From the NCBI GenBank assembly GCA_950097015.1, contig CATNEN010000008.1:558001-622000 (forward strand): DNA of 64,000 nt, in the 5' to 3' direction. The notes under the pieces are model-generated. The model did no database searches. It was not told where the DNA came from and was given only the letters and a program-made list of their open reading frames with translations. Positions 9,301 to 15,300 of this stretch are shown here, piece after piece. Source of the DNA: Macrostomum hystrix (taxonomy: Eukaryota; Animalia; Platyhelminthes). The translations under genes and the position numbers were made by a program. How positions within the stretch are numbered: position 1 is the stretch's first letter; every line of letters starts with the position of its first letter.

Positions 9301-12300
9301 CCTCAACAAGTTTGACCTTTTCTTCACGACGGTGTTTACAATTGAGATTATTCTCAAGGTAAGTTACAAATTGCACTAGAAAATTTTGCTTAAACTTTAA
9401 ATTTGATTTAACAACAAAATTATGCTTACACACTAATAGCTCTTTCAGATGCATAATTTAGTTCATTTTAAGGTTGCGATTATCTTATGGCTATAACGTG
9501 GCGATATGCAATACTGACTTACGGTATGACCATATACAAGTGCATTAATATCATTTGTCCTGAGTGTAGGGTGATTCACTTTTATCCCCCACTTGTCCCG
9601 GTCAAATAAGTCTATGGTCTAGTGTTGAAGCATTTATTTGTCCGGGACGAAGAAATATTATTCGTCCCGGACGAGGAAACGGTTTATTTGGAACCGTTTC
9701 GATCAGAACCATAGACTGTTGAGCTATAGTTCTTTTTTTCCACAAGACCGAGCCAAGTTGGGGAAAAAAACTTTCTCCCCCGTTTATTCATTTGTCTATG
9801 GCCAGAACGACTGAGAACTTGTTTCTCGGCCGAGGCGCAGCCGAGGCCAGAGAAACAAGTTCTCAGTCGTTCTGGCCATAGACAAATGAATAAACGGGAG
9901 AGATTATATACTTATCTATGGCATAGGCGAAAAATTATTGCTTCCAATCTGAATTTATTCTACTTGTGCGAACTGCTGCCTAGTTATGATACTAACTAGA
10001 TTTTTTATTACGTCATGCTACCGCAACGAAAATTTCAAAACAATATATCGGCGATAGAGGGGATTCGATGTTGATGAAGAGGAGAGGGTGGATAAGGAGT
10101 TGGGTGTTTGTCTTGTGAGGTTAGCAGTCGGTGGGTGAGAAGGAAGGTGGGTGAGGTGTTAGGCGAGTGCGGAGTGAGGTGGTTCAGGTGTGAGGCGGGT
10201 GAGTGTTTGTATGGGTGAGAAGGGAGGTTGAGTGAGGTGTAAGGTGGATGAATATCTGGCGGGTGAGTATTGCATTTAATTTTTTGTTCTGCAAATAAAT
10301 GGACTTATATGCAGCTAATCACAGTATGCGCAAAACATGCAGTATTTCAATAAAAATTTGACCAGCTTTATTAATCAAATCAATAGTTCGAGCTAGATCT
10401 TGTTACATTTTCCCGAAAAAATGCCGCACTTCTTCTTGATTTGCCCAATTTAATTGCAAAAATTATCCTGTACTTACTAACATGATAAAAATAACAGCAG
10501 CGACTAGCATAAGCCCTCAAGAAAACAAAGTGAGCAATGTTGATGACACTTTCAGGTCACAGCATATGGAGTAATTCTGCACCAGGGCGCATTCTGTCGA
10601 GCGCCATTTAACCTGCTCGATATGCTGGTCGTGTTCACCAGTATTATCTCATTCTGTCTCGAGTATGTCCTCTGATTTCGTACAAAAACTGTTTTTCTGT
10701 CATCTCCCCCTGTTCCTTCGCTTCGCATGATCCGCACATAGAGCTCACCTATCACACACTCAATTTAGAATCCTCACCTCTGATTCTGTCTTCCAGCATC
10801 ACTGAGACTGGCTTGTTTAGTAATTCAAAAGCTTCAGTTTTTATTGCTATTGTTAGTTTAGCAGTTTAACAGTAGAACTACCAAGGGGGGAATCCCCCAC
10901 TGACAATTATTTGCACTGCTCCCGAATGGAGCAACGCAAGCACACGAAACTCAAGATCATCTTTTGAAATAAGAATCAACTCGCCAGCCCTTTAGACCGT
11001 CGAGATATTCATCGGTTCTGGCCGAAAGTCAGATTTTCGCCATAAGAGCTAGTGTATTGCATACACCTGTATGCACAAATACGCAATGCGCCTCACTTTG
11101 CCGCGCCTCTAAACTTGGATCAGCATGTCACCCGAATGTGCCTGCATCATCTCCGACTTCAGTGGTCACGCAGCTTTCTTTAGACGGAGCTGCTGCTCCG
11201 GAAATACCCCCCCTTGGTATAAAAACGGGTGGCAAAATGGCTTGATAGTCCTACTGTTAAACATTCGTTTTAGTCTAATATCGTGCGCCTGTGTACATAT
11301 CCACGTGCTCACGGGTCAGCGGAACAGGGAGAGTTGCCTTCTCGTTGGATGCGGGTCGATTGTCGCCAAATGATGCACCAGTGTTCTTAGAGCTATGAGG
11401 AACAAAATGTGATGGTTAGATGAGCAACAGTCAATTATTTGTAGAACTGTACTGCTCAGTTCTATTGCTCAGTAATAGCTCAGTAATAGCTCAGTAATAG
11501 CTCAGTAATATCTCAGATACTAAATTAATGCGAGTAAGCATAGCGACAGCCTCACTGATGCTGAAATACTTCACGAGGAATCTTAATCACACCACTCGAA
11601 TTTGCATCGCACGCAAAGTCACTGCGACATCGCCTAAAATATCGCTTGTCGAATCCCCTCTCCTAAAAAGTAGTCAATAACACTGGAACCTTGGATGTTA
11701 TGTCAGCACAATATTAACCCTCGGAAACTGCATCATCGCATGCATATTACCTGCTATTGCCTGATGCGATTTTCGTTCTCATCGTTACTTAACCTGCATT
11801 GTATTGCAACACTAGTAGACAGTAGCCAGTGTAGTGTCCCTTTTTGTTATAATCGTACTATATTATCATTTAAAGCAAGCCAAGCATGTGCCTGTTGTAC
11901 CAGTCCGGGTCTATTTCTTCTATTTTCTTTTGTCTAGCAAACAGTTAGACTCGAACAAAATTATTCAACAATGATAGAGCACTGCAACTTGGGTTTTGCA
12001 ATTGTATGCGCCAACATTTTACGTCTTCACTTTTTGTAAGTCGCTCCCTGAGAGTTAAACCATTTTCTTAAATTAAAAACTGGTCAAGTCAGTCAATGTT
12101 TTCGATTGCGCAGTGCAGAAGAAATTACATTCACCAGAGCGCATTTAAAAGGTGGGGAAAGAGCATGTGATATTTCTATTTGTATATTGTCTGAATGCCG
12201 TTGTGTCGCAAGAGCACGGGACAAAGCAAGCGAAAACTCTTCCAGGTCATTTCATACGGAGTTATTCTGCACGAAGGCTCATTCTGCCGTTCAACTTTTA

Positions 12301-15300
12301 ACTTGTTAGACTTGTTGGTAGTGTTCGTTGCTTTGATGTCATTCTTCATCGAGTGAGTCCAACGATTGCGTTCCTATCAGTTTCCTTCCGGTTGGCTTGG
12401 AAAGCATTCTTTAACTGAATTTTCCGACGTCAAGTATTGTTAGGAGTATTCTCGCGGTTTGCTAGACTGATTGTGCTTTGATTATTTACTAATCTATTTT
12501 GCTTTTTTCTTCTCTACGCCTTCTGGTGTGAGCACATGTACAACTCGAAAGTTTCGGTTGCCTACAATTCGATGATCAATACTGGCAAGAATATTACTTG
12601 ACATGTTTATTTGAAGAGTATTATAAACTATATATGTATATATATATATATATATAGAGACTGCATTCATTTTGGGACTAGGTAGGAAACGTTTTGTGGC
12701 GAGAGCAATGCCTCCTTGCTGGATGCCAGATGGCAAAGTGCCAGTAAATGGAACTGTGGAAATGCGACTGTAATTTCATTAATTATGAATTATTGACACA
12801 CGGTTACATAGAACTTAAAACTCTATTTATCCTTTCGATTAATAGCGTGACTCGTTCCATTTTGATTTGTCATTCCGAATCCAACAAAATTCATGGAGTG
12901 CCGGCAAGCATCAGTTTAGTTTCAATATTTATTTTTTCTTTATTTTTCTTTCCGATTTTTAGCGATCCTGCAGTTTTCGTTAGCAAACACAATGCCAAGA
13001 TATATATATTTCAGAGCTTCACATAACTTTCGAAGGTAAAAAAAATCGACAAATGCGAGTAATATTGAGTACTAATTTGTGCCTAGGTTCCAGAGTTTTA
13101 TTTGATTCCATCGGTTTTTGTGAAGGCAAGTTTTTAAACTATGAATTGGTTGCTGACATTTTCTCTGCTGAAGAATTTCTCTTTTAATAGAAAGTAGCAT
13201 TTGTATCCTCCATCCATGAAGGAATCTAAGAAGGATTTAAAGCATCATGCGATAAGTACAATTCACAAAAGTTTCGCTTCAATTTCATTCTAGAAATGAT
13301 ACGTTCTCCGTAGTGAAGATTCTGCGCGTACTTCGAGTGCTTCGACCGCTGCGTGCTATCAACAGGGCCAAAGGTTTAAAGGTGAGTTGCAAAGGTTACG
13401 TTACATGATTCATTCAAGGAGCTTGTAGCTAAGTGCTACTTCGGGCTTCTGACCGAGAGAGGTCACCTGGCTCAACTACCTTGTATTTCTATTCTATTCA
13501 GCACGTCGTCCAATGCGTGATTGTTGCGATAAAGAGCATTGGAAACATCATGCTGGTCACGTTCCTGCTGGAGTTCATGTTTGCCGTCATCGGAGTGCAG
13601 CTGTTTAAGGGCAAATTCCAGAGCTGCACTGACCCGTCCAAACCCACTGAGATGGAGTGCAAGGGCTTCTACATCTCATACAAGGGCAACGACATCAACA
13701 GTCCGGAGTATCAGCCCCGAGAGTGGAGTAACAACGAACTCAACTTCGACAACGTGCCCCACGCTCTGCTCTCCTTGTTTGCCGTGGCCACTTTCGAGGG
13801 CTGGCCGAAGTGAGTCTGGCTATGTCTAGTGCTACTGATTTTTGTTTAACTCTTGCTTAGAATTTTAAAGGTTCAAAAATTCAAAACTCAATATTTAAAA
13901 TTCTCTACATAAAGCAATAAAAGCATCTGAATCCCCGTTTTCAGGCTGCTCTACAAGTCGATTGATTCAGCACAGGAGAGTCGAATAGGAATCTACAACA
14001 ACAGGCCACCCGTCGCAGTCTTCTATGTGGCTTTCATCATTGTGATAGCCTTCTTCATGATTAACATCTTTGTCGGCTTTGTCATTGTCACCTTTCAACA
14101 GGAGGGTGAACAGGAGTACAGAAACTGCGAGCTGGACAAGAACCAGGTAAGACTCGCTTTATACAGAATACATTAAATCAATGGCATTAATCTTATCGCT
14201 ACAATTGCATATTTTGTTCTCACTCCGATTCCGCAGCGAAAATGCATAGAATTCGCTTTAAAAGCAAAGCCAGTCAGGCGCTATATACCGGAGAAGAAGT
14301 TCCAGTACAAAATCTGGTGGTTCATCACATCGACCCCATTCGAATACGGTATCTTTGTGCTAATCATGTTCAACACGATTGCGCTGGCTATGAAGGTAAG
14401 CATTGTTGTTTTATATCGCCTCTTCGTCATCCTAGTTACTCAAAATTGACCACTTTATAAAATGTCGCTTTCAGTTCGAAGGTCAACCGGACACCTACAG
14501 CTTGGCGCTTGACTATCTCAACATGATCTTCACTGCAATCTTCACAATAGAATTCATTCTTAAACTCATCGCCTTCAGTTTCCGGGTGAGTTTTTAGAAC
14601 GACCATGGGATATTTCAAATGCCCACACTTACCTTTTTTCTGTATCTCCCAAAATGTTCAACCAATCACCATGAAAATCCAAAACTTCAGATAATTTTTT
14701 TCTTTCTATCTGATAAAACGACTTCCAAAAATTACAAAGCATTGGCATCTTCCAGATATTCAACGATTCACGCCGGGTTGTAGCTTGTGGCAAAAACCAC
14801 CAATATATAATTTTTGTGCCCACAAAATTTCATCAAGTAACCACGTTAGCTATTATTGTTGATTAGATTGTATTGATTATATTGATAATTATTATTATAT
14901 TACTGAACCAATTATGGCTTCGCTATAGGGGTTTATACAGATATTTAATGTTAGCTGTCCCTGTCTCTAGGGTCTTCGACAAAAATATGTCTATCACGAC
15001 GATGTTGACGTCGGACGGTTTTGAAAGTTAGTTCATCGTAAAGGGCGAAGAGTTTCAATTCATATGGCGGACTTTCACGAAAACCGGTGATTTGGTTTGG
15101 GAGCTATCGTGGAGTAGGCAGTGAGTATTTGAAGTACACTCGTCGTCTTTCCCTAGGGGGGATAGCGTGGTCTTTCTACTGTTAAAAATACATAGGTGCT
15201 GTTTATTGGCTCTGCATCACAGCTGACGCCAAAAAAATAAATTAATGCACGCAGAACTACTTCAGCGACCTTTGGAACGTGTTCGATTTCATCATCGTTC

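Follow-up and report, generated by a model that had tools for sequence, protein, structure and literature searches.

Two tandem IIIS3 exons in a Macrostomum Cav1 calcium-channel gene as a probable mutually exclusive pair

Two adjacent, homologous 107-nt exons, designated a and b, follow the IIIS2 exon and precede the IIIS4 exon of a calcium-channel gene in the window, the 64,000-nt stretch of Macrostomum hystrix DNA analysed here. They are best explained, with a probability of roughly 0.7, as a mutually exclusive pair that is policed by the reading frame and that alters voltage sensor III. Since exon a is used in RNA and the conservation of exon b is that expected of a functional exon, two versions of this sensor can probably be produced from the gene. 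We infer that exon b is used, that the choice is exclusive in vivo, that nonsense-mediated decay operates and that the swap shifts the behaviour of voltage sensor III.

Each exon encodes the end of IIIS2, the S2-S3 linker and IIIS3, and the Glu codon that either one leaves open is completed by the first base of the IIIS4 exon. The anatomy is that of a mutually exclusive pair, the two being neighbours of equal length and phase with AG and GT splice sites. The initial annotation had placed two same-phase 107-nt exons at this site, and the coordinates, translations and flanks that it gave are all correct (Table 1). A tblastn search of the whole window detected exons a and b as the only copies of IIIS3 and found no second copy of the IIIS2 exon. 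The translated IIIS2 exon agrees at 75% with IIIS2 of trematode Cav1, and the IIIS4 exon is 93% identical to trematode IIIS4. The intron upstream of exon a contains a 54-nt near-perfect inverted repeat (9774-9903), and the intron separating the two copies contains high-copy repeats (~10814-11404) that reach a depth of 200-500 in the RNA run, X1.

Table 1. Features of the exon pair and its flanks, in window positions; a slash marks a splice junction or exon edge
Feature	Positions	Strand	Description
IIIS2 exon	9299..9358	+	60 nt, constitutive, upstream partner of the pair; RNA junctions 8814/9299, 9358/10556
Intron IIIS2 to exon a	9359..10555	+	1197 nt, GT..AG; absent from the spliced RNA contig
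Exon a	10556..10662	+	107 nt, phase 0 to 2; acceptor ...ctttcag/, donor /gtatgt; RNA-supported
Intron a-b	10663..12245	+	1583 nt, U2-type GTATGT donor
Exon b	12246..12352	+	107 nt, phase 0 to 2, intact; acceptor ...cttccag/, donor /gtgagt
Intron b to IIIS4	12353..13293	+	941 nt; RNA contigs over 12364-13060
IIIS4 exon	13294..13381	+	88 nt, constitutive; junctions 10662/13294, 13381/13502

To judge from its sequence, the Macrostomum gene that hosts the pair encodes the alpha-1 subunit of a Cav1 (L-type) calcium channel. Exons a and b match the solved Cav1.1, Cav1.2 and Cav1.3 chains with E values of 3e-12 and 6e-12, respectively, the matched stretch in Cav1.2 being residues about 952-985, whereas matches to solved Cav2 channels have E values of only 1e-6 to 1e-2 and those to Cav3 and Nav channels exceed 0.3. 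Exons from several of the channel domains match Ion_trans (E 5e-49 to 5e-7), and an ORF at 27885-28109 carries a visible L-type-like IQ motif. The Ca_chan_IQ profile, run against the single IQ exon, scored 23.4 bits, short of the cut-off of 26.7 bits.

Exons a and b are 70% identical as DNA and share 22 of 35 residues (63%), a similarity far beyond chance (tblastn E 2e-13). Their homology ends 10-20 nt beyond the exon edges, which argues that the exon duplication is old. The first 19-21 intron bases past the two donors are also similar, to an extent not clearly beyond residual homology. Substitution between the copies is dominated by synonymous change (dS 1.17, dN 0.25, dN/dS 0.21), and in simulations a neutral copy at a divergence d of at least 0.45 retained the 22/35 identity in <1% of cases. 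Neutral decay of one copy, the outcome against which the initial annotation had staked its reading beforehand, appears to describe neither exon, given a dN/dS of about 0.2 and the conservation of b in M. lignano. Over the S2-S3 linker and IIIS3, about 13 of 36 residues distinguish the encoded proteins, and comparison of the translations bears out an earlier statement that the differences fall in the linker and the outer part of S3. Consistent type-specific differences occupy positions 2-3, 16-17, 23, which adjoins the conserved S3 Asp, and 28-29, in the outer half of S3, where the a-type has Thr-Ser and the b-type Val-Ala.

A survey of orthologues, as the initial annotation had proposed, located both exon types in one further gene. 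A gene model of M. lignano (P0001, UniRef A0A1I8JP16), an automatic, genome-based prediction available at the protein level only, contains an a-like copy followed by a b-like copy, the order observed in the window. The b-like copy (b′, P0001:436-467) is identical to b at 28 of 32 residues, on a par with constitutive exons (19/20 for IIIS2), and b and b′ form a clade with support of 96/97; the identities of a to its counterpart are 21/29 and 25/36. Two trematode Cav1 loci each have a single IIIS3 exon, resembling the a-type, and the pair is therefore not general in flatworms. Two Araneus entries (P0159 and P0189) that appeared by coverage to hold tandem copies were rejected, as on reading they proved to be one exon followed by IIIS4, and read-through of an intron.

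Since 107 is not a multiple of three, messages that contain both exons, or neither, are frameshifted into a stop codon. With a and b both included, translation stops about 20 codons into b (codon 21), so the initial annotation was right that double inclusion breaks the frame; with both skipped, the IIIS4 exon is read in phase 0 and a stop is encountered at its codon 2. On the explanation proposed here, an exon orthologous to the vertebrate Cav1 IIIS3 exon was tandemly duplicated long ago, before the split between the window gene and its M. lignano homologue, and both copies have since been retained as coding sequence. Each productive mRNA most likely takes one of the two, with exclusivity policed at least by the reading frame; mRNAs with both copies or with neither would be unproductive and probably cleared by nonsense-mediated decay. 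Cell-type-specific splicing factors presumably decide between a and b. The 'at least four channel cores' proposed in the initial annotation would require the pair to combine freely with an IVS6 pair of the same gene.

Other devices known to enforce exclusive splicing were looked for around the pair. Steric hindrance was ruled out, as the a-b intron is too long at 1583 nt. U12 signals are absent, the donors being GTAAGT, GTATGT, GTGAGT and GTGAGT, with AG at every acceptor and no ATATCC or GTATCC donor. Docking and selector RNA pairings of the Dscam type did not stand out from shuffled sequence, the best two-way duplexes being -25.1 and -22.4 kcal/mol, compared with -24.3 and -21.5 kcal/mol for the best shuffled controls, and the top-scoring duplex site falls inside a transposon-like hairpin. 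No Rfam families were detected in the introns.

RNA evidence comes from the assembled contigs of one run (X1). The initial annotation had pointed to the junctions on either side of each copy as a check, and those of exon a were found: a 3382-nt spliced contig without mismatches contains 9358/10556 and 10662/13294, and so joins IIIS2 to a and a to IIIS4, skipping b. The junctions of b are absent from the X1 contigs, and no contig in this run covers exon b; contigs drop rare variants, and the missing exon is therefore weak evidence. Contigs that match exactly, at a depth of 3-7, are present at 12364-13060 in the intron between b and IIIS4, and they begin 11 nt past the exon b donor. Word searches with the M. 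lignano IIIS2-b region, the exon-b ORF and a 91-residue part of P0001 yielded no protein derived from a transcript that includes b. The first of these returned 27 hits, among which the only further Macrostomum protein was P0031, and the last returned proteins of other phyla only, each with a single IIIS3.

Should exon b be a pseudo-exon, left over from the duplication and never used in a gene that always takes a, then the sole spliced contig in X1, the lack of coverage of b, the outcome of the word searches and the trematode homologues, which manage with a single a-type-like exon, would all be as expected. We nevertheless consider this unlikely. Despite a dS of about 1.2, exon b keeps an open frame and both splice sites, and the copies differ at 4 of 35 second codon positions versus 15 of 35 third positions. 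Exon b is also nearer than the expressed exon a to the animal-wide consensus, with 25 versus 21 of 35 residues identical, a comparison used only descriptively because the simulated test of identity to the consensus was started from exon a and was therefore unfair. Similarly, b is the nearer of the two to Cav1 IIIS3 in 105 of 148 other animals, a being nearer in 15. A second Macrostomum gene, moreover, holds a b-type copy that is as well conserved as its constitutive exons.

Exon b might instead be a regulated 'poison' exon, included together with a to lower channel output through nonsense-mediated decay. The stop codon within b of the a+b message fits such a role, as do contigs from the b-to-IIIS4 intron when exon b itself is missing from stable RNA, which could reflect use of the b donor in unstable messages. 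A poison exon would, however, have no need of a conserved protein sequence, yet b has a low dN/dS, retains the S3 Asp and the FN-LD-LVV core, and closely resembles b′; the frame conserved in b is, in addition, different from that read in the a+b message. This role for b is accordingly quite improbable. Least credible, and in our estimation very improbable indeed, is the incorporation of both copies into one protein by means of a cryptic donor inside exon a. P0001 does run 29 a-like residues straight into b′, in frame, but it is an automatic model built from the genome, the extra half helix would break the S1-S4 topology, and in the RNA contig from the window exon a is complete and is spliced from its normal donor at 10662. 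Mutually exclusive use of a and b is the reading that we prefer.

A further evolutionary proposal, speculative and rather doubtful, is that the duplication is older than Macrostomum, the a-type being flatworm-specific and the sole exon of trematodes and the b-type being the ancestral spiralian S3. If so, a free-living flatworm would have a switchable voltage sensor III in one Cav1 gene, with one 'parasite-type' and one 'ancestral-type' form, and the two forms would differ in gating or drug sensitivity. Cav channels of parasitic flatworms are of pharmacological interest, and the single IIIS3 exon of trematodes is similar to the a-type. Voltage sensor III is among the sensors that drive the opening of L-type channels. 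A natural swap limited to the S2-S3 linker and S3 would provide a ready-made experiment on the role of S3 in voltage dependence. The pair also adds to the signs that calcium-channel diversity in this flatworm arises, for a few genes, from exon rather than gene duplication.

The design of the pair is familiar and its site has not been reported for the Cav1 family; a literature search yielded no description of a IIIS3 exon pair in Cav1, nor any paper that deals with the splicing of Cav genes in Macrostomum. In the same gene family, exons 31/32 of CACNA1C form a mutually exclusive IVS3 pair. Exons 8/8a of that gene are a mutually exclusive pair for IS6 (PMC3060452), and exons 21/22, also mutually exclusive, encode IIIS2 (PMC5748662), confirming the earlier assertion that the vertebrate alternative exon in domain III is IIIS2. 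CACNA1C thus resembles the flatworm gene in exchanging a single transmembrane segment by means of tandem, homologous exons, and its 21/22 pair adjoins, on the upstream side, the position orthologous to the flatworm pair. In the flatworm, however, the IIIS2 exon is single and it is the next exon downstream, encoding the S2-S3 linker and IIIS3, that is duplicated; the flatworm pair also precludes joint in-frame inclusion, and its origin in flatworms was independent.

In a tephritid fly, Rhagoletis pomonella, the Cav1 isoforms X1 and X2 (XP_036335354 and XP_036335355) are equal in length and differ only in a short domain III block, the pattern expected of a mutually exclusive pair, but the block is IIIS5 and not IIIS3. 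In cockroach sodium channels, IIIS3-S4 variants of the para type alter both gating and sensitivity to drugs. The insect sodium channel gene para, with its mutually exclusive IIIS3-S4 exons (k/l; 27A-D in Liposcelis) (PMC3805903), is the closest precedent, one that the initial annotation did not mention, as S3 of domain III is swapped in a homologous four-domain channel. Para, however, encodes a Nav rather than a Cav1 channel and belongs to another phylum, and its alternative exons include S4, whereas S4 in the flatworm gene is on a separate, constitutive exon.

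Exon a and exon b of the Cav1 (L-type) alpha-1 gene, paralogous copies that encode the end of IIIS2, the S2-S3 linker and IIIS3, lie as described in the initial annotation between the IIIS2 and IIIS4 exons, and the positions and phase given there hold; its interpretation of the pair is supported in part. In a tblastn search of the whole window, IIIS3 was found only twice and the IIIS2 exon once. Both copies end within a Glu codon that the IIIS4 exon completes with its first base. With both copies included, exon b is read one base off its own frame and a stop follows after 20 of its codons, confirming that double inclusion breaks the frame, and with both skipped the IIIS4 exon stops at codon 2, so that only messages with exactly one of the two exons would encode a channel. 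The stops in the faulty messages lie far upstream of later junctions, and nonsense-mediated decay would be expected to remove such messages. We regard a and b as probably a mutually exclusive IIIS3 pair policed by the reading frame, with a probability of about 0.7.

Exons of the IIIS2 to IIIS4 region (positions in the window)
Feature	Position	Strand	Description
Constitutive IIIS2 exon	9299-9358	+	60 nt; upstream neighbour
Exon a	10556-10662	+	107 nt; acceptor ...cag|, donor |gtatgt; 35 codons + 2 bases from first base
Exon b	12246-12352	+	107 nt; acceptor ...cag|, donor |gtgagt; 35 codons + 2 bases from first base
Constitutive IIIS4 exon	13294-13381	+	88 nt; downstream neighbour

In a search against solved structures, the best matches of both peptides are L-type channels, Cav1.2 (residues ~952-985) and Cav1.1 (residues 852-883), with E values of ~3e-12 (exon a) and 6e-12 (exon b). 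Next in rank are Cav2 channels (E 1e-6 to 1e-2), and there is no significant match to Cav3 or Nav structures. Ion_trans domains are present in other exons of the window, an IQ-domain match falls just under the cut-off and an L-type-like IQ motif is visible among the ORFs.

The RNA data are from one run, X1, stored as assembled contigs from which minor variants are lost, and evidently derive from the same organism as the window. A contig of 3382 nt aligns with zero mismatches through the joints 8814|9299, 9358|10556, 10662|13294, 13381|13502 and 13809|13945, plus one more GT..AG joint near 14143-14237, and every stretch that it skips has GT..AG ends. Exon a is therefore in use, with the flanking exon borders correct and exon b skipped in this transcript. 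The junction check proposed in the initial annotation is answered for exon a; exon b is covered by no X1 contig but, as rare forms are lost in contigs, the run demonstrates the a form and not the lack of a b form. Three exactly matching X1 contigs, at a depth of 3-7, tile 12364-13060, starting 11 nt past the exon b donor within the b-to-IIIS4 intron, whereas no contig falls on exon b or on unique sequence of the intron between a and b. These contigs could be the excised intron, in which case the b donor would be cleaved, but they could also reflect slow splicing of this stretch or belong to an independent, unrelated transcript; the region has no match to an Rfam family.

Mutually exclusive choice through U12 incompatibility is ruled out, as all donors are U2-type, as is steric hindrance, the intron between a and b being 1583 nt. 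A scan of the locus for docking site pairing beside both exons gave duplex energies no better than shuffled controls, the top site being within a transposon-like hairpin. With these routes unsupported, the choice is probably set by trans-acting splicing factors.

The introns of the gene are rich in repeats. High-copy, transcribed interspersed repeats with many variant contigs are present at 8844-9237 and 10814-11404 (summed X1 depth up to ~11,000 and ~500, respectively), similar ORF fragments occur near 1496-1747 and 29009-29257, and the peptide-like strings common to these ORFs suggest a SINE or other transposon family. The IIIS2-to-a intron has a MITE-like hairpin at 9774-9903, an inverted repeat of 54 nt whose arms are 98% complementary and separated by 22 nt, beside which an RNA contig maps with 7 mismatches. 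Downstream introns contain long tandem minisatellite arrays (~21860-24750 and 26790-27830), whose open frames, 300-630 codons long and present on either strand, were rejected as repeat artefacts rather than genes.

Exons a and b have 70% DNA identity and 22/35 identical residues, with 22/35, 31/35 and 20/35 matching bases at codon positions 1, 2 and 3, respectively (Nei-Gojobori dS 1.17, dN 0.25, dN/dS 0.21). Beyond the exons, the similarity continues for no more than 10 nt on the upstream side and 19 nt on the downstream side (repeat finder, family D1), indicating complete divergence of the surrounding introns and an old duplication. When neutral drift was simulated in a simple form at d of at least 0.45 substitutions per site, the 22/35 identity was retained in <1% of trials, and ~40% of trials were stop-free.

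A profile of a and b was searched against 1.84 billion representative proteins. The top match, with 112 bits and two matched stretches, is P0001, a genome-based gene model from Macrostomum lignano (UniRef A0A1I8JP16 by cluster look-up); a second M. lignano protein, P0031, is also among the matches, and two Cav1 genes, Cav1A and Cav1B, have been reported in flatworms (PMC8980814). P0001 has IIIS1, IIIS2, 29 a-like residues (406-434) and a b-like exon (436-467), the order of the copies matching that of the window. Searched back against the window, the a-like part is 66% identical to exon a versus 53% to exon b, and the b-like part 87.5% to exon b versus 69% to exon a. As each part best fits its own type, the duplication is older than the divergence of the two genes. 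The divergence is itself not recent, as the domain II transmembrane stretches are ~78% identical (counted on the alignment) and the II-III linker can hardly be aligned. Within P0001 (406-467), the public model joins a truncated a-like exon in frame to the b-like exon; this fusion is almost certainly a prediction artefact, and databases therefore misrepresent the M. lignano channel here.

The initial annotation also raised neutral drift of one copy, which is not borne out at the protein level, for b against this one gene model. Exon b retains 28/32 residues of its counterpart, all four substitutions being conservative, comparable to the constitutive IIIS2 exon (19/20) and IIIS1 (~92%); exon a retains 21/29 in P0001 and 25/36 in P0031. 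Compared with 148 Cav1 IIIS3 sequences from other animals, b is nearer to 105 and a to 15, and b also agrees with their consensus at more residues (25/35) than a does (21/35). A neutrally drifted copy would be neither the more canonical one nor conserved like a constitutive exon, a pattern that favours a function for b. A maximum-likelihood tree was built from 60 IIIS3 peptides; it rests on 36 columns, and its deep forks are unreliable. In this tree, the two b-type exons form a clade (support 96/97), and the a-type exons cluster weakly (82/83) with the single trematode IIIS3 exon.

Within the exon, a-type and b-type differ in both genes at positions 2-3, 16-17, 23 and 28-29. Of these, position 23 adjoins the conserved S3 Asp, aligned with Cav1.1 D872. 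Positions 28-29 are Thr-Ser in a-type and Val-Ala in b-type exons, position 28 being Val in ~90% of other animals. This polar Thr-Ser pair lies in the outer half of S3, where it could change the surroundings of the S4 charges. The differing residues may face S4 and alter gating.

At the Cav1-homologue loci of the trematodes Opisthorchis viverrini (L001) and Paragonimus kellicotti (L002), a single IIIS3 exon separates IIIS2 from IIIS4, with no second copy at E up to 1. Word searches of proteins found no tandem IIIS3 in further taxa, two apparent cases being traced to alignment effects or to read-through of introns. The evidence so far makes the pair a feature of the Macrostomum lineage; alternatively, it may be older and have been lost in trematodes. 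The trematode IIIS3-to-IIIS4 intron is ~250 nt in Opisthorchis (L001 23167-23611) versus ~5.5 kb in Paragonimus (L002 17564-23325), and L002 has an additional partial IIIS1-like copy at 12468-12603.

A literature search turned up neither a Cav1 gene with an IIIS3 exon pair nor any account of Cav splicing in Macrostomum. Two Cav1 isoforms of the fly Rhagoletis pomonella (X1 and X2; P0006 and P0152), both 2342 aa, differ at only 6 residues, all in IIIS5, as would be expected from two IIIS5 exons spliced in a mutually exclusive manner. The exchange of single transmembrane segments through mutually exclusive exons is well established for this channel family. In CACNA1C, exons 8/8a encode IS6 (PMC3060452) and exons 21/22 encode IIIS2 (PMC5748662), in agreement with the earlier statement that IIIS2 is the alternative exon of vertebrate domain III, and in insect sodium channels IIIS3-S4 is exchanged by mutually exclusive exons (PMC3805903).
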